DNA from: Eukaryota sp. TZLM1-RC
Taxonomy: Eukaryota; Protista; Metamonada: BaSk clade
DNA length: 64,000 nucleotides
Assembly: GCA_040285825.1 (NCBI GenBank)
Contig: JAUPSS010000004.1
Location: 6,043,784-6,107,783 of the forward strand
Reading direction: 5' to 3'
Below are positions 54,498 to 64,000 of this stretch, piece after piece. The translations under genes were made by a program, and so were the position numbers. Under the pieces are notes generated by a model. That model saw only the letters and a list, made by a program, of their open reading frames with translations, did not search any database and was not told where the DNA came from. How positions within the stretch are numbered: the first letter of the stretch is position 1; each line of letters starts with the position of its first letter.

Positions 54498-56928
54498 ATG
54501 CCTATTATCGGCATTGATCTTGGTACTACGAATAGCTGTGCGTACACTTGTGAGCGCAATGGAACGTTTGTCAGTTTTGTTATTGACTTCAGCCCTGATC
54601 TTGTTGATATTCAAGGGCAATCCACTCTTCCGTCCATGGTGGCATTATGCGATGGCATTGTAGCGGTTGGCGAGCCAGCTTTGGCTATCCAAGAAGACGA
54701 TCCACATCTAGTCGCCAGAGAGTTTAAAAGACTAATGGGTCGTTCTTTTTCACATCCTTCAGTGCAAGAAGTTCTGAAGAGATTCAACTATACTATTAAA
54801 CCCAGTGAGAAGGGGGACAGTTGTTCTATATTATTAGAAAACCGGACTTTTACTCCTCAAGGTTTGTACCTGACGCTTCTAATTCAAGAACTATCAAGTT
54901 TTGTTCTACGTCGTTTAAAAGAACTTGCAGAAGATCTCCGTGCTGTTCAGTATAACGAAGCTGTGATCACTGTCCCTGCATATTTCAATGATGCCCAGAA
55001 AGATGCAACAAAGCAGGCAGGAGAAATCGCTGGCCTCAAGGTGTTGAGAGTGTTGGAAGAGCCCATTGCTGCCGCTTTAGCCTACCGCCAGGCAAACCCT
55101 GATCTTGATCTTGAAGGTAAAATTATTTTAGTTTTTGATCTGGGAGGTGGAACCTTTGATATCACCCTTGTCAAGGTCAACAAACAATCTCTCGAAGTCA
55201 TTGATACTGATGGTGATGCCATGTTGGGAGGAAGTGATTTTGATGAACTCTTGTTCGAATACTGTCTCAATGCTGCTGATCAAAAATACCCAGATCATAA
55301 TTTACGTAAAAACTCATTGTTTAAGTCAAGGTTACGTAGCAGATCAGAACAAGCTAAAAAGAGACTGTCCACTGAAGAAAACGCCCGTATTTCTCTCAAG
55401 GTTGCTAGATCAGTTACATTTAGCAAAATGATCTATAGAACAGTGTTTGAAGGTCTCTGTCAGCCCAAGTTTGATCAATGTATGAACTTAGTTGCAGGTC
55501 TGCTGAAACGTAGAGGCATGACTTCCGATGATATCGCACAAGTTCTGTTAGTGGGAGGCTCTACCAGAATTGCAAAAATACGTCAAATGCTGAGGGACAC
55601 TTTTGGTAAGGACAAGGTAAAAGGAGACCTCAGAGTAGACGAAATTGTTGGACGTGGAGCTTCCCTTGCCGTCAATAATGCTGGAAATGAGGGAAATGTG
55701 GTGTTACAAACGATTACGGCCCATTCTCTAGGCACAGACTTTATTCGTCAATCTACAACGACATACCACAGCTATTTGATCTTGGACAAATCTGGAAGTA
55801 TGTATTCCAAGAGAGCTACGCCCACAATGGACTGGGTACAGCAGGAAAACATCCTTGGTGCTGTTGTAGAAAATACCATGAAATTTGCTGAAACAAGAGC
55901 CAAAGAATCTCCTCAAGATAGAATCTCGATTATAACGTTCAACTCTTCAGCAAATGTTGTGGTAAACGGTCTTCCTGTTACAGCTCTGGGTGAACTCAGG
56001 GACAAGCTCAATGCGATTATACCTGCAGGAACCACAGACTACCTTTCTGGTCTCTCTACGGCGTTTCAACTTGCAAGTCAGCAGACCGAACTTCAACCGC
56101 TGTTTGTTATGCTCTCTGATGGGTGTGATGGAAGAAGAAGAACTGAGGCTGTTCAATGTGTAGAACAGTATTTTGCTTCTAACATTGGATGCCAAATGCA
56201 TACAATAGGTTTTGGAAATCCTTCAGATTTTAAGCACTTGAAAAACCTTTCTTCAATTGCTGGCGGATCTCATTATCATTCATCTGACTCAATCTCTCTA
56301 GGGAAAGCCTTTGATGGTATCGCAAAGGGTACAGCCACCCCAATGGGAAATCAAACTGAGGAATGCTATCACATCATTCCACGAAGAACGCGCATTCCAG
56401 CTTCTTCTTCTGCCACTTTTGTCAATTGTTTTGATAATCAAAAGGAAATAAGTGTCAAAGTATTGGAAGGAGAGAAGAGGCTTGTTTCAGAAAACCTACT
56501 GCTTGCAGAGTTTGTTTTTGAAATTGACCCAAAGCCAGCCGGTCAGTCCAAGATTGTTGTTGTATTTGAAGTAGACAGCAATGGTTTGTCATCATGTAAT
56601 ATTAACATTAGGGATTTTACAAGTAACTGCGTCTGCAGATGGCCGTTCAAGAGTGGTTCGCATCAATAAGAAACCTGGAGTGCTGAGTGATAACCAGATG
56701 TTCAATGCCCAAAACGACTGTGATGACTTAATGTTGCGCTCTAAGCTTATGTCTCTTTTTGGTGAGCTCAACGAGAAAATAGATACACTTCCGCTCTCCA
56801 AGGTTGAGTCTATTGTGTACAATCGTTTAGTCCAACAAATAGACAATGTTTTGAAGCGCAAAGCTTCTGTAGATGAAATGCAGTTTTTGCTTAATGATTG
56901 TAGATCTGAGTTAGCTTCTCTTGTATAG
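54498..56928 (+). CDS. Hsp70-family protein with a vWA domain inserted in the substrate-binding domain (introns 54566-54592, 54862-54888, 56584-56611)
   Basis: [44 protein letters not shown]; [23 protein letters not shown] (MIDAS); then [30 protein letters not shown]. Confidence 0.9.
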
Positions 56929-57228
56929 TTTATGAATTTTGACAATTGGTTGAATATAAAAGTTTTTGAATGTTAAATTGTCATTTTCAAACTGATACTC
57001 TGGACTACACTGTATCATCACTTCAATGATTTAGAGTGTTGAAAAATTGCTGGGTCGTCTTAAATATTTGTTGCCATTTAATGCTGTTAGACGACAGTTA
57101 TATTTGATGCCAAATACAAAACAATTTTCATTATGTGATGACTACAAACTATTTTTTGATTGTATATTACTAATATATGAAAAATTATCAAATAATCAAT
57201 TGAATTTGTATTTACATCAATATATCAG

Positions 57229-59729
57229 CTAACGACCCAAAAACAACTGTTTCATTATAGATAAGGCAGATGCTCCACCTGACCTCTGTCTCCTTGCTTC
57301 TTGTTTAGGTAACTCTGAGCGCAAAGGAACCAGTTCCTTAGATACTGTTGGCAAAAGTCCATCCAAACAGCGAAGAATTTTGCTTTTAGAAACCTGTTTG
57401 AAACCAATATTCTTGTTTATGGTAAGAAAATTCATAGCCAAGTTATAACAAGGTGCGGACGGTTTGTGCAAAAGCAAGAAAAATGTTAGAAACAACAAGT
57501 CAGCTTCGACAACCTCTTCTAGAAATATCCCATAATGAATGTAATGATGAATTGAATCAAACGAATGTTCAGTTTGAATATGGAATAAAAACAACCTCAT
57601 GACATCATTTTTGAAACAAGATAGGAAGTCGTTGGAAAAGTTGAGAACAGGATTGTTGGAACATTGAACATTTGGTCCAAAATGGGTCAAAAGATGATAA
57701 CTTGCCAGCCTGTTTCTTGTTGAAAAGGAATAATGAATCGCATTTTCAATAGAAAAATCATTGAGATTGTCAGTTGGAGTCTTGATTGTATCAAAAAGTG
57801 AGGAGTACGTAAAAATATCAATTTTGAACAAAACAGTCAGCATTTCCACCATTTTTAATAAAATAAATCTACTTGATGTGTGACTTTCTGCATTCGACAA
57901 ATTTTTGAAATTGCGAATGAGTATTTGTAACTGATAAAGGTCCCTTTTTGCAAGTAACGCTTTGGAGAGATAAAAATACACTGGAAATTGAAAATCAAAG
58001 TTTTGGATAAGGCCCATATATTTTTTGAATCTGGCAATAGCTAGGTCAATGATATTAAAATTATTGATCCTATTTGAAAATTCTGTCAATCCAAATTTCT
58101 CAGCAATAAGCTCTATAGCCACGATGGCAAACTGTTGTGTCTCCCCCAAAACTGTATAACTATCCAAGGCTGATAGTAATTGAAAGATATCGGCCATTGA
58201 CTCGAACTCATTGAATAATCTGTCCAACTGATGGGGATACGACATGCTAGAACGTTCTTCAGCACTCATGATTAATTTTGAGTGATGAATTATTTTTCTA
58301 AAATGACTGAGATCTAAATAGGGCAATCCAGATAAATTTAATGTTTCTAGAAAGTTGTTTGTTAAATTTTTCCAGACCACACAAGGATTCAGTTGAGCAA
58401 ATGGCTGAGTCATCATATATTGAGTCAATTCTTCAGCAAATTCTTCTCTTTCTGCCGCAAAATGTCCAGCTAAACGTTGAACAGAAGAAATTGATCTTGC
58501 TCTATTCTCCAAGTAATCATTTACTGCATGGAAGAAGTTCATTGAAGTACTCAATGGATGCTGTGAAGTGAGATCAGCCTCAATAATATTTGAAAAATTC
58601 AAATTATTGACACTACTGTTCAAATAGGAACAATAGAGGGCAGCGCCTTGATAAACACTTGATTTAAAATCAAAGTTGCGAACATTTACTTCAGGAAAGC
58701 GCTCCATGAGAGTAGACCTGACTTGTTCAATTCTAGAAATACCTCCAGTCAAAATTATAGTGGTACATCTATACAATTCAATTGCTCTTTGAATAATGGT
58801 GAATGCAAAAAAGAACACGTGTTTAATGAGTAAGGGCTCAAATTCGCTGTACTTGATGACCAAAGGTGACACGTCAGCAATACAGTCAAAAAGGTCAAAT
58901 AATAACCTGACCCGTCTTGACCGTTCTCTACAGAATTTTAAGCGAAATTCTTGACATTTTTCCAAAAGCAATCTTCTGGTAACAGCATCAGTGGTCAACT
59001 TTTCAAAACCAAATGGGTCTTCTGTTTGAATATGATCTAGAACCAATTGATAAAGCTCTTGATCGATTGCTTGACCTGAGAATTCGTTAGTTACACTGAA
59101 AGAGTTTTGAATAAATTTGCATTGAGTTCCAACGGCATTAAATGCAACAATATCAGTGAATGAATAACCAAGATTGCAAGCCAAGAAGGTACCGTCTTTA
59201 GGGGCTTCTCTCTCAAAGAACCTGATGGCTACAGATACTGATGCAGGAATGATGGAATGAACTTCGATGCCGGCAGCTTGGAAAGCCAGGAGAAGGAGCG
59301 AAGCACCAGAGTAATGAGGATCCGAGAGAGATGCTGAATGAGAAACCACAGCAGAAACTTTTCCATGATGATTCAGTCTACGTTTCATCTTACATAAGGC
59401 AACGAACAGTGGAAAAATAGCAGGTAAAGAGAGCGGTACTCCGTCGATTGAAACAGCAAGTGTAGAATGTATGTTGTGTGTACTAAAAGGAAGCACAGGT
59501 TCGTCAGTGTGCAGAGAGTTAATGATAATCGTACTGGTGTCGTCGACAAGCTCGACGTCTTCTAAAGATGAAAACTGTTGAACAGAGAATGGTTGGTGAA
59601 GTTGACTTGAGTGAGCACCAAATATGGAGGTACATACTTAAGTGGAAACGATACTGGATCTCTGAAACTACCATTTTCATAGATAGATACGTAAAAATCT
59701 TGACAAGAAATGTCTACTCCAAGCAACAT
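57229..59729 (-). CDS. Highly divergent Hsp70-like NBD plus unknown helical C-terminal region (intron 59606-59637)
   Basis: LLGVDIS, AFQAAGI, ACNLGYSFTD, FSGQAID, IILTGGISRIEQV, VYQGAALY: NBD motifs in order but degenerate. Confidence 0.75.
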
Positions 59730-60068: not shown

Positions 60069-63000
60069 ATGCCATTCTTTGGGGTGGATCTGGGAGCTGA
60101 CAAATGTCGTCTCTGTTCCTTAGATTCTTATGGAAGGTTTGTACATTGTAATTCGTTCACCAAAGGCCAATTCAAATATCTTCGATCCCCACTGCTGTTG
60201 CCATTTCTAATGGTGTAACTCTTTGTGGTGATGATGCTCTTGATTTACTACAAGAAGAAGCCACAGTTGGAGTTCAAGGATTTAAACTTTTACTTGGACA
60301 GAAATACTGTTCCCCTGAGATCCAGAATGAAGTACCTCATTTGCCATTCATTGTTCAGTCTTCAGACGAAGGTGAGTGTGTCATTGAGCTTGAGAACAAC
60401 CAGTATACGGCCACTGAACTATATGCCATTATTCTGGAAACGCTAAAATCTCAGCATCAATCTGATTATAACACCACCGTTAGCAACGTTGTTCTTTCTG
60501 TACCTTCGTTCTTCAACGACAGACAAAGAACTGCTCTCATAAGTGCTGCTCGCATGACTGACCTAACACCTCTCGGTTTAATTCAGGAATCGTTAGCAGC
60601 CGCTCTAGCGTTTCAACAACACACCTCCTCACGACTTATTGGTAAATCTGTACTTGTCTTTGACCTTGGTGCTAGCAAACTCGACGTCACAATCCTCAAA
60701 GGTGATGATCTTTCAATTCTCTCCAACAGTAGTACTCAAATGGTCTCTTGTTCCAAATTTGATGACGTTATTTTTGATTGGTTTTGCAACCACGCGTCTT
60801 CTCAGCTCCCACAAAGCGTAATTAATAATGTCGATTTCAGACAACAGTTACAACTAAAATCAAGACAGGCGAAGGAAACTCTATCACAAAGTCCATCCGC
60901 TTTTATTTCTATCGAAGGTTCTAGTTTCAAAAAATCAATAAAACTTTCTGATTTTGAAAGGGAATCAGATTTGTTCTTCGTTGCAACAATGCGCATGGTG
61001 AACACTGCTCTCAAATCAGCTGGCTTGAGCGCTGAATGTGTCAATGAGGTTATTATGGTTGGAGCCGGGTCTAATATTCCCAGAATGAAACAAATGCTTA
61101 GAGATAAGTTTGGTAATACTAAAGTTAAGGTTGATTTTCCGAGAGACGTCATGGTGGTAAAGGGTCTTGCCTTGCTGAACAACTTTGCACATTTGGAACG
61201 TCATCTTATTAATATTCCTCAACAGGTACCAAATGAACGAATGGATAAGCATGCTGTGAGAACTTGGAAAAGTCATTTAATACAACTGAGGGATGAACTA
61301 GAGGCGAAAATCTCTGATCCTGGATTAAAACTGTCAAAAGCACAGATTAATCAGTTCAAGAAGATAATTAAAAACATCACCACGGAATTGGGTAATAGAA
61401 ATACTGCAAATAATTTGGCGTCGGTTTACCAAAAAGCTATACAAGATCAGAATGAGAATCTTGGTGCAGATGGTGTTGAAGATCGTCAGTTATTAACTAC
61501 TGCCAGTCCATATAAGTCATCAGGACAATCACTTGTTCATTCAATGTTCAATACAGCAGCTATACCACCAGCAAGTGGTATCAAGGAGCCTCCCAATGAT
61601 CCAAACAATCCTTTTAAATCATCAGGAAAACCACTTGTTCATCAGATATTCAATACTAGGACGAGGCCACAATCAAATGATGCTCGTAGTGAACGAACTG
61701 TTAACCATTCAGATGTTGCGATAGATCTTGATCCTGAATTTAGATTTCTGGCACAAACACCTTCTCCAAAAGCACGAAGACCTGCTTCCAACCCAAATGA
61801 TCAACCAAATAGTGATGAGGACAAAGGTTTGACCCTGGCAAAATCAATCAAAAAATGTAAGGGTTGCTTGTTTTATCTTTTTCTCATATCTATTTTTGTC
61901 TTTCTATTCGTTGGTGTCCCTTTTACCACGACTTTTGATGTTGTATCAACATTATTCTGCCCATCTTCAGTTTTAACCGATGCTGGCCATGTTTCCTTTT
62001 CTCATCGTAATCCTGAGTTCAATCTGCACCATGCATCATTTGGATACTATTTTGAAAGTGAAGTTTATTATAACTATGAATTTGATGAAGTTCCTGAAGT
62101 TTTTGTTGCAATCCTCAATGTTGAAACGTCCAAACAAATCGCCTTTGATGTTAATGTTTCTTATAAAACTAAGACACATTTCCTGTTGATCATTCGAACG
62201 CAAGCTCCTTTGGAATATCCACGAGAAATTTTTCTAGATGGTGTAGGAATCACTTGGGTAGCAGTAGGGACCATGTGTACCAAAGAACAATTAGCTTACA
62301 GTAACTCTCAATTTGCATTTATCAATGGTAATTCAAATTGGAAGCTCAATTCAGTCACGCCTTTTTCCTACCAAAATTCAAATGATATCATTATCTTATC
62401 AGCCTTTCAGGGAGTCTATTTCGAAGGACTTGATGGTTTTAATGATATTCAGCAAGAAACCTCTATTTCAGAGGAACCAAAAAGCCACAATTTAAAAGTT
62501 GATGCTGTATTCACTAGTGAAGGTTCTGTTCAGGAATTTCGACACAATAGTTTAAGCTTTAATTATTCTGAAGCCAGATACAACACAATTGATATAGGCC
62601 AATTTCAAATTAACCAAGGCCTTGGTGACAGTGGTCAATTTGCTTTAAAAGTCGATTTTTCTTTTGAATTCACCAGAGTCCCAAATGTTTTTGTCTTTTT
62701 GGATGGTTTCCAAACCTATAATTCTTCTCTATCATATAGAATTGAAGTCGTTGAAATTCTGTTCACTAGTTTCACAGTAAATATCAATATGTTAAGTGAT
62801 TCACCAATGAAAATTTGGTTTAACTTTATCGCAATTGATGAAAATTTTGACACATTCGATGCTGTAGACCTTATTCTATTTTCAATTTTCCTCTGCTTAC
62901 TCATCACAGCTTTGTTGCTGGAATTGCACAAACCTAACCTTGTTGGAGCTTACAACACTGATGAAGAGCAGTACCATAACCTAGGTGATTATACCCATGT

Positions 63001-64000
63001 GGCCAATTATACACCTCCCAAACCAGAAGAGGTATCCAAAGCTGGTTCATATATACCTCGTGATATTAAGTGGCTTGAATGTCTTACTGAATGGAGAAAT
63101 GTCAAGCAAGATTTTTCAGAAACCAAACGTGACACTTTTGGAATTATATTTTGGATGGTGTTTGGAATGATATTGCTAGTATTTTTACTACTATTTTACA
63201 GGGAATTTATCCTGGCCACCAAGTTCTTCCATTCTGTTCAATCAGTCTATATAACACTGTTTATCCTTGGTCTGGAACATTTCCTCATTGTGTTGGCATT
63301 TTTCACGGTGACGTGGCCTCCACATAGAATGGTAAAGGGTTATAATCACAATCCATCGAACGTTGCAGTGCTTATTGCTAGTCATATGAGTGCTGGTAAA
63401 GATCCACAATTAGTTAAGAAAGACACAAAAAAGAATTTCTTTAAATATGATGAATCAAAGTTAAAAGAAAACCAATCAAATGTACAAGCACAATTCACCC
63501 GTGCTCTCAGACTTGCCTCAGATAGTGTGGCTAATGGCAATGTTTACGTCTGTCACAACACAGGAGATGAAGCTCCCCATCCTACTGATAAGACTGTCAG
63601 GATCATTCGTAATGTAGAGGCTTGGGGAAGGAAGGTCAACTACGTATGTGTTGTTGCAATTGTTCTAACAATCAGGTATATATTCCAGCTGGCAACAAGA
63701 CATTTTGTCTTTACTACGTGTGTTTCATGTCATTTACCTAAACATAGGTGGCCAAAAATATTTTGGGAAATAGAAAAGATATTGATTATGTCGTGATTAT
63801 GGATGATGACGTTGTAATTCCCCGTGATATGAGTTGGCAAACACATAGGCTGAAGAAAGACAATGTCTGTGGTGCTGTCGTTACAATCAGGGCTGATATC
63901 AATGATCCTGAAAAGAGTGGGTTTAGGAGAAGAAAGTTACTTGTATGGTTTCAGGACCTCGAATATTTGCTCTCAGGGTTGATGAAGCAATGTCAGAGCA
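60069..64000 (+). CDS. Fusion: Hsp70-like NBD - TM - H-type-lectin repeats - 3 TM - processive GT2 domain (introns 60137-60165, 63644-63675, 63718-63747; 3' partial)
   Basis: FGVDLG, SVPSFFNDRQR, VFDLGASKLD, KETLS, MVGAGSNIP; V.F...F..VP.VFV repeats; VAVLIASH, YIPAGNK, YVVIMDDDV, FQDLEY after splicing. Confidence 0.8.

Follow-up and report, generated by a model that had tools for sequence, protein, structure and literature searches.

To our knowledge, the only polysaccharide synthases known to be joined to cytoskeletal motors are the myosin-chitin synthases of fungi and molluscs. BcsB, the extracytoplasmic partner of BcsA, is of carbohydrate-binding type and has its own transmembrane (TM) anchor next to the channel (4p00-type structures). 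Natural H-type lectin trimers carry their sugar sites between protomers. The myosin domain of Ustilago maydis Mcs1 tethers vesicles before exocytosis and displays no motility in vitro (PMC3252574). The gene described here lies in a window of 64,000 nucleotides, which is the whole stretch of DNA analysed and the basis of all numbering (positions 6,043,784-6,107,783 of contig JAUPSS010000004.1, assembly GCA_040285825.1). It comes from TZLM1-RC, the type isolate of Skoliomonas litria. This flagellate of soda lakes is a free-living anaerobe that feeds on bacteria, and its clade is sister to Fornicata. A nucleotide-binding domain (NBD) of Hsp70 type, a linker, a lectin-fold ectodomain and a catalytic domain of glycosyltransferase family 2 (GT2) are joined in its product, which is a real, conserved and hitherto undescribed variant of the accessory-domain-fused membrane GT2 synthases.

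The gene resembles the myosin-motor chitin synthases (U. maydis Mcs1, A. nidulans CsmA and that of molluscs) in having an ATPase-fold module, predicted to be cytosolic, N-terminal to a multi-pass GT2 enzyme. Unlike in those enzymes, the head is an Hsp70 NBD or, in paralogous genes, a kinesin motor, the GT2 domain is not Chitin_synth_2, and the lectin ectodomain is present only here; the analogy is one of design only. The kinesin-headed paralogues are the direct parallel to the myosin-motor chitin synthases (fungal class V/VII, mollusc). As in BcsA-BcsB, a membrane GT2 is paired with a predicted extracytoplasmic module, and BcsA is a structural match of the catalytic core (Z 12.1-13.0); unlike BcsB, the partner is in cis, precedes the catalytic part and is folded as a triple H-type lectin, and there is no PilZ/c-di-GMP control. 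Here the design idea recurs in a free-living metamonad with other parts, a kinesin or Hsp70 NBD inside and a predicted lectin-fold trimer outside. The chief interest lies in one and the same synthase core being found with a kinesin in some genes and with an Hsp70 NBD in others.

An open reading frame of 1151 codons is present on the plus strand at 60341-63796, its frame being already open from 60167, and 1159 codons are read without a stop from the NBD into the GT2 domain. The genome's own deposited protein model (P0001, 1532 amino acids) comes from an RNA-seq-trained pipeline (GeneMark-ET, AUGUSTUS, PASA), and its splicing is identical to that read from the DNA. When all GT..AG pairs near each junction were enumerated by script and the spliced products compared with P0001, a single combination reproduced it, with five introns of 29, 32, 30, 32 and 30 nt, all of which start with GTNTGT and end with AG. 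The segment 60069-64000 of the window holds exons 1-4 of the six-exon gene; the remaining exons lie past the window, and the stop is at about 64820, about 820 bases beyond its end. The layout of the gene is as follows.

60069-60136, plus strand: exon 1, the ATG and the opening 23 residues, among them the phosphate-1 loop of Hsp70, FGVDLGAD (DNA reading and P0001)
60137-60165, plus strand: intron 1, 29 nt, GTTTGT..AG, which restores the long frame (exon solution compared with P0001)
60166-63643, plus strand: exon 2, 3478 nt, with the rest of the NBD, the linker, TM1, three lectin-fold modules, TM2-4 and about 100 first residues of the GT2 domain
63644-63675, plus strand: intron 2, 32 nt, GTATGT..CTAAC..AG (exon solution compared with P0001)
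63676-63717, plus strand: exon 3, 14 codons, containing GNK
63718-63747, plus strand: intron 3, 30 nt, GTGTGT..AG
63748-64000 in the window and on to 64082 beyond it, plus strand: exon 4, containing YVVIMDDDV and FQDLEY
equivalent to 64083-64114 and 64315-64344, beyond the window, plus strand: introns 4 and 5 (contig sequence around P0001)

Because a single stop-free exon holds the NBD, the lectin modules, the four TM segments and the beginning of the GT2 domain, the NBD-lectin-GT2 fusion is independent of any intron call. An earlier note on this DNA, made from its letters, had described a stop-free frame from 60166 to 63643 followed by two tiny introns. The long frame is real, but it remains open as far as 63796, and what ends at 63643 is the exon; both introns were recovered at 63644-63675 and 63718-63747, but a third (60137-60165) is also present near the 5' end, as the note's own start at 60069 implied. 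The domain order given there (Hsp70 NBD, linker, TM1, lectin repeats, TM2-4, GT2) was borne out by Pfam, hydropathy and the exon solution, and the motifs VAVLIASH, GNK, YVVIMDDDV and FQDLEY lie where the note had placed them. When the reading was extended past 64000, as the note had proposed, GED, the QxxRW variant QRVKSW and at least three further TM segments were found. Its count of two clear lectin-like repeats and one degenerate also holds, modules 1 and 3 being recognised by sequence and module 2 by its AlphaFold2 (AF2) fold.

In a transcript that retains intron 2, the frame would run for 51 further codons to the stop at 63796, and the product would consist of the NBD, the lectin modules and the four TM segments, without the catalytic core.

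The domains are given below with the residues of P0001; Pfam was run exon by exon, and the other searches used P0001 or its parts.

60069-61222, plus strand: Hsp70-type NBD (residues 1 to about 375), from Pfam HSP70 and Hsc70 structures, with no substrate-binding domain
61223-61861, plus strand: helical, low-complexity linker (residues 376-588)
61505-61555 and 61607-61657, plus strand: two copies of a 17-residue motif in the linker, xP[YF]KSSGxxLVHxxFNT
61862-61918, plus strand: TM1 (residues 589-607), from hydropathy, preceded by a Lys-rich stretch
61961-62281, plus strand: lectin-fold module 1 (residues 622-728), with a structure match to Helix pomatia agglutinin (HPA) and discoidin I
62282-62575, plus strand: module 2 (residues 729-826), a degenerate six-strand beta-sandwich in the AF2 model
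62576-62851, plus strand: lectin-fold module 3 (residues 827-918), the stretch that matches Pfam H_lectin best
62864-62920, plus strand: TM2 (residues 923-941), from hydropathy
63137-63301, plus strand: TM3 (residues 1014-1032) and TM4 (residues 1050-1068), from hydropathy
63350-64000, running off the window, plus strand: N-terminal half of the GT2 domain, with VAVLIASH (63362-63385), GNK (63691-63699), DDD (63802-63810) and FQDLEY (63949-63966)

The Pfam HSP70 profile (PF00012) matched exon 2 alone with an E-value of 6.2e-48 (163.8 bits against a cut-off of 20.6), and Hsc70 NBD structures were matched at E 7e-33. The HSP70 match covers only profile positions 33-370 of 599, and neither a peptide-binding domain nor a helical lid was found after the NBD, the Pfam match ending at position 370. 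The idea that the helical stretch that follows is an Hsp70 lid found no support, as residues 355-470 match no Hsp70 lid among solved structures. The residues of the Hsc70 ATPase site, which we take to be D10, T13/T14, K71, E175, D199, T204 and D206, are in part preserved: the equivalents of K71, E175, D199 and D206 are retained in the alignment to Hsc70 NBD structures, and that of D10 is retained by eye, the first 28 residues lying outside the structure alignment. In the same stretch read by eye, T13/T14 are A/D, so that the phosphate loop GTT becomes GAD. The second phosphate loop is changed from GGGT to GASK (T204 to K), and the adenosine motif from GGSTRIP to GAGSNIP.

No relative of the linker was found among solved structures, and its duplicated 17-residue motif may be a short linear binding motif. 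After the GT2 domain, hydropathy places at least three C-terminal TM segments at residues 1407-1483. The ectodomain (residues 608-922) lies between TM1 and TM2 and has an invariant Cys pair and three N-x-S/T sites; since both features fit it, an extracellular placement of these residues is favoured. Together with the hydropathy, these features support the topology foreseen in the earlier note, with the NBD and GT2 domain predicted to be cytosolic and the lectin modules, in the TM1-TM2 loop, outside.

Pfam H_lectin (PF09458) matched exon 2 in two stretches with E 1.2e-10 (41.8 bits against a cut-off of 24), the score reaching up to 47.2 bits across runs. The AF2 model of the ectodomain, built with 7 homologues (predicted local distance difference test, pLDDT, 77; predicted template-modelling score, pTM, 0.80), consists of three six-strand beta-sandwiches. 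Module 1 is bracketed by C621 and C727, the sole cysteines of the ectodomain, which are invariant in 7 homologues. Its model was superposed on HPA (2ccv) with Z 6.9 and a root-mean-square deviation of 1.9 Å over 89 of 99 residues, on discoidin I (2w94) with Z 6.6 and on SLL-2 with Z 5.9; Foldseek gave a probability of 1.00 to 2ce6 (HPA) and 3wmp (SLL-2). Module 3 reached discoidin I and HPA in profile matches at E 0.008-0.009, and it was aligned with module 1 by hhalign at a probability of 96% (E 2.6e-9). Modules 1 and 3 are, by their sequence, H-type lectin modules. Module 2 was tried as a further sequence repeat of these two, and was accepted as a fold-level copy only, no similarity being detectable with hhalign.

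The whole ectodomain model resembles engineered single-chain trimers, namely the C1q head (5hzf, Z 8.0) and adiponectin (4dou, Z 7.9), as well as the three-lobed C-terminal domain of PCSK9 (Z 8.0) and the APC-beta domain of TgPLP1 (Z 7.0). Among ESM Atlas entries, fungal triple-H_lectin proteins matched the model with a TM-score of 0.71-0.79 over 267-269 residues. As judged from these models, the natural H-lectin trimer is most likely reproduced by the three modules within one chain. The fold, the Pfam family and the predicted three-module arrangement are common to the ectodomain, the H-type lectins (HPA, discoidin I/II, SLL-2) and the fungal triple-H_lectin proteins; unlike the H-type lectins, the three modules lie in one chain, one of them is degenerate, the pocket Trp, Tyr and Arg are replaced, and the whole is anchored in the membrane on both sides.

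The pocket residues of HPA, which we take to be D26, R63, W83, H84 and Y89, are at positions that agree with the aligned HPA sequence, and pocket residues W235 and Y241 of the discoidin DscA are needed for sugar binding. Retention of the GalNAc pocket of HPA was considered and rejected: in the profile alignment module 3 has Ser for Arg, Leu for Trp and Lys for Tyr, and module 1, compared through its alignment with module 3, is also without the pocket Arg and Trp. Carbohydrate binding by the modelled ectodomain is thus unproven, as the pocket residues of HPA and the discoidins are not conserved, and the Gal/GalNAc binding for which the earlier note cited H-type lectins is not supported for these modules.

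In the catalytic domain of P0001, DDD is found at residues 1215-1217 and GED at 1313-1315, followed by QRVKSW and an amphipathic stretch directly after this W motif. A profile made from five skoliomonad sequences collected 526 proteins at E <= 0.001, and P0001 is joined by the family profile, at E < 1e-30, to members that pass PF13641 and PF13632. Over 58 aligned family members, PF13641 was matched by 51, PF13632 by 40, Glyco_transf_21 by 11 and Chitin_synth_2 by 6; for P0001, Pfam reported no match to Myosin_head or Chitin_synth_2. Positions that never vary among the 58 are an N, the K in GNK, the three Asp in DDD, the E in QDLEY, HG, the D in GED, and Q, R and W in QRVKSW. The W motif reads QRxx[RS]W family-wide, as QRFxRW in fungi and as QRV[KR]SW in protists.

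Neither phmmer nor a 5-sequence profile matched the GT2 half to solved structures, and the 58-sequence profile met chitin synthase 7stl weakly (E 0.23), with QxxEY aligned to QNFEY and QRxxSW to QRRRW. The GT-A core of the AF2 model best matched the hyaluronan synthases (HAS) 8smm (Z 14.9) and 8snc (Z 14.6), followed by BcsA (Z 13.0 and 12.1) and chitin synthase 8k52 (Z 11.3). Xenopus HAS1 (8smm) and Chlorella virus HAS (8snc) align with it over 187-188 residues at 13-19% identity, and the order of the DxD, acid-Asp and W motifs and the flanking TM segments are similar. Unlike the hyaluronan synthases, P0001 has the W motif QRVKSW and no phmmer relation to the solved structures, and it is much larger, with two extra domains. 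The domain belongs to a divergent eukaryotic GT2 family that in its motifs and modelled fold agrees with the membrane-embedded polymer synthases (hyaluronan, chitin, cellulose synthase type). An 'Egghead protein family' cluster is among the closest Atlas clusters, and no characterised member was found for this GT2 family.

One profile search of relatives, which covered proteins of about 215-684 amino acids and is given here for the best 120 of 244 matches, had uncharacterised Ascomycota GT2 proteins as the closest named relatives (E 1e-80 to 1e-90). These proteins (500-700 amino acids; Exophiala, Penicillium, Aspergillus) share DDD and QD(L/M)EY with P0001 and have QRFxRW as W motif; unlike P0001, with which they share about 25% identity, they have only GT2 families among their precomputed Pfam domains. 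From the literature they could be equated neither with TFT1, a mixed-linkage glucan synthase, nor with CpsA/Cps1. No Giardia or diplomonad protein appeared among those 120 matches, which for proteins of this length range is not an exclusion. The tie to cyst walls and Giardia drawn in the earlier note gains nothing from this search, and cysts are reported for isolate TZLM3-RCL, whereas the present genome is that of TZLM1-RC.

The comparison with related genomes confirmed, at the level of sequence, that the architecture is real and conserved. The orthologue P0002 of Skoliomonas GEM-RC1 has the same domain order as P0001, and the rest of its GT2 domain was located by tblastn directly downstream, with 52% identity in the intron-interrupted middle and 76% over the last 236 residues; in-frame stops in this alignment are confined to intron-like inserts. 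The GEM-RC1 orthologues are annotated as two gene models each, split inside the GT2 domain at uncalled introns of about 30 nt (L002 8300-9000, L005 5900-6996), which exposes systematic annotation errors at such introns in the sister genome. Three GEM-RC1 copies share the NBD-lectin-GT2 order. Cross-species identity is about 30% for the NBD, 44% for the ectodomain and 76% for the GT2 domain. The ratio of non-synonymous to synonymous substitution (dN/dS; Nei-Gojobori, two closest GEM-RC1 copies) comes to 0.24 in the NBD, 0.27 in the ectodomain and 0.19 in the TM segments and GT2 start, and to 0.92 in the linker. The value of 0.24 against 0.92 therefore suggests that the NBD is constrained like the other parts, and the linker not; judged by this ratio, the NBD is under purifying selection.

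A kinesin motor stands in place of the NBD in P0004 and P0005 of the TZLM1-RC genome, in P0006 of GEM-RC1 and in P0008 of TZLM3-RCL. The motor is matched in Pfam at E 1e-52 to 1e-61 in these four proteins, and is followed by a linker, a TM segment, H_lectin modules, further TM segments and a GT2 domain 65-68% identical to that of P0001. In a maximum-likelihood tree of the region from TM1 to the GT2 start, P0001 and the three GEM-RC1 copies form a clade with support of 100/99, nested in a clade of 100/99 that includes the kinesin types. No Hsp70-type copy was detected in TZLM3-RCL by searches that were non-exhaustive. In other skoliomonad and barthelonid members the N-terminal region either matches no Pfam domain or is very long. 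Every skoliomonad and Barthelona PCE member examined has the ectodomain in cis with the synthase, irrespective of the module at its N-terminus. Eight members were sampled that come from elsewhere or have no known origin (Andalucia, Phalansterium and Telonema among them), and H_lectin is missing in all of them (8/8). No publication was found in which a kinesin motor domain or an H-type lectin is coupled with these synthases, and the literature searched likewise held no description of the architecture, which the earlier note had taken to be undescribed.

Two further observations concern the wider family. P0004, which is located at L004 1001-6302 (contig JAUPSS010000002.1, assembly GCA_040285825.1), has by eye the P-loop GGSGAGKS, and in switch II DLAAFD instead of DLAGSE; a motor of this sequence may bind microtubules without normal ATP turnover. 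P0018, P0024, P0027, P0028 and P0029 of skoliomonads and barthelonids are distant GT2 members of 2100-3200 amino acids, in which 1400-2200 N-terminal residues are without a Pfam match.

These observations make it reasonably probable that one gene encodes a multi-pass membrane GT2 synthase which exports a glycan, and which has a product-holding ectodomain and an interchangeable cytosolic adaptor head. The GT-A domain, cytosolic between TM4 and at least three C-terminal TM segments, would make and export a beta-linked surface or wall glycan, and the ectodomain would lie beside the exit site and hold the nascent chain or existing matrix glycan, comparable to BcsB with BcsA. The N-terminal ATPase-fold module would be a swappable cytosolic adaptor that sets where or when the synthase is delivered or switched on, in a role likened to that of the myosin motor domain of fungal class V chitin synthases, among which U. 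maydis Mcs1 is the nearest case worked out, and not to that of a chaperone. The kinesin motor at the NBD position in the sister genes changes the most likely role of this module; with an Hsp70 NBD where a kinesin can also stand, an adaptor or switch is favoured over a chaperone. The earlier note's proposals that the synthase binds its own product and is controlled by a chaperone-like module had been suppositions, and the protein has no substrate-binding domain. A wider proposal is improbable. It holds that a skoliomonad surface-glycan synthase family uses an exchangeable ATPase-fold head, kinesin or Hsp70 NBD, as a guidance or gating module, the NBD having been recruited for nucleotide-dependent tethering or switching, that the lectin pseudo-trimer captures the nascent chain, so that the whole would be a self-contained wall-building machine of a 'track, make and hold' kind, and that this is possibly the long-sought enzyme type behind metamonad cyst-wall glycans.

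Several findings weigh against the adaptor-headed polymer synthase. Both phosphate loops of the NBD are changed, orthologous NBDs are only about 30% identical, and we know of no Hsp70 NBD partner or cytoskeletal link that would parallel a kinesin. The sugar-pocket residues of HPA and the discoidins are not conserved in the aligned modules. P0001 alone is sub-threshold for PF13641 (22.7 against 27 bits), NCBIfam assigns it no family, and its relatives reach only weak PgaC/IcaA scores. In QRVKSW, Ser replaces the Arg of the canonical QxxRW, although the Q, R and W never vary. The GT2 half gave a poor AF2 model (pLDDT 48, 5 sequences), in which the membrane part is unreliable and only the GT-A core usable.

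The same findings bear on other explanations, of which those for the two functional halves concern what the enzyme does. The GT2 domain could be non-processive, transferring one sugar at a time to a glycolipid or glycoprotein, as do enzymes of egghead or glucosylceramide-synthase type; the Glyco_transf_21 matches in 11 of the 58 family members, the Egghead cluster among the nearest Atlas clusters, the non-canonical W motif and the unreliable membrane part of the model all point that way. It is nevertheless quite unlikely: hyaluronan synthases outrank soluble GT-A enzymes as structural matches, three TM segments before the domain, at least three after it and the amphipathic stretch after the W motif recall HAS, chitin synthases (CHS) and BcsA, some members reach Chitin_synth_2 and PgaC/IcaA, and a big extracellular domain of carbohydrate-binding type is hard to explain on a lipid glycosyltransferase. 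It is unlikely that the ectodomain, instead of handling the product, is a purely structural cap or, as a receptor or adhesin, recognises ligands that are foreign or belong to the matrix (prey bacteria, substrate, neighbouring cells). The replaced pocket residues would suit it, as would the bacterivorous habit of the organism and the use of H-type lectin folds by phage tail fibres and discoidins to bind protein or bacteria; against these stand its constant fusion in cis with the synthase in the members examined, the purifying selection on it (dN/dS 0.27) and its location beside TM2-4, which flank the catalytic domain, a position that suits product handling.

Doubt about the head takes another form, namely that the NBD is a non-hydrolysing pseudo-ATPase, a scaffold or oligomerisation domain without a nucleotide-dependent role. 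This is somewhat unlikely. The replacements GTT to GAD, GGGT to GASK and GGSTRIP to GAGSNIP are what such a domain might display, the identity of about 30% between orthologous NBDs is far from the 76% of the GT2 domain, and a neighbouring Hsp70-like gene also matches HSP70 weakly (E 1.9e-6). On the other side, the equivalents of D10, K71, E175, D199 and D206 are kept here and are kept or conservatively replaced in GEM-RC1, and the dN/dS of the NBD is 0.24. The joining of head and synthase could itself be an artefact of annotation, in which adjacent Hsp70-like and lectin-GT2 genes were merged, and the GEM-RC1 annotators did call two genes; their split, however, interrupts the GT2 domain, where tiny introns went unrecognised, and does not part the NBD from the lectin, 1159 codons run without a stop from the NBD into the GT2 domain, and three GEM-RC1 copies have the same order, which leaves this explanation extremely improbable.

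If a polymer synthase with an interchangeable adaptor head is the true state of affairs, the family would offer a compact model for how cells choose the site of wall or coat polymer deposition. It would also put the Hsp70 ATPase fold to a new use other than that of a chaperone, and would open a first way into the synthesis of surface and cyst glycans in the lineage sister to Giardia and other fornicates.

Two Hsp70-like genes lie upstream of the fusion gene, at 54498-59729 of the window. The plus-strand gene has HSP70 together with a von Willebrand factor A (vWA) domain, and its NBD is 28.7% identical to that of P0001; the minus-strand gene is the one with the weak HSP70 match, and has a helical tail. 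An HSP70-like gene is also present in GEM-RC1 upstream of P0003 (L005 290-1327).

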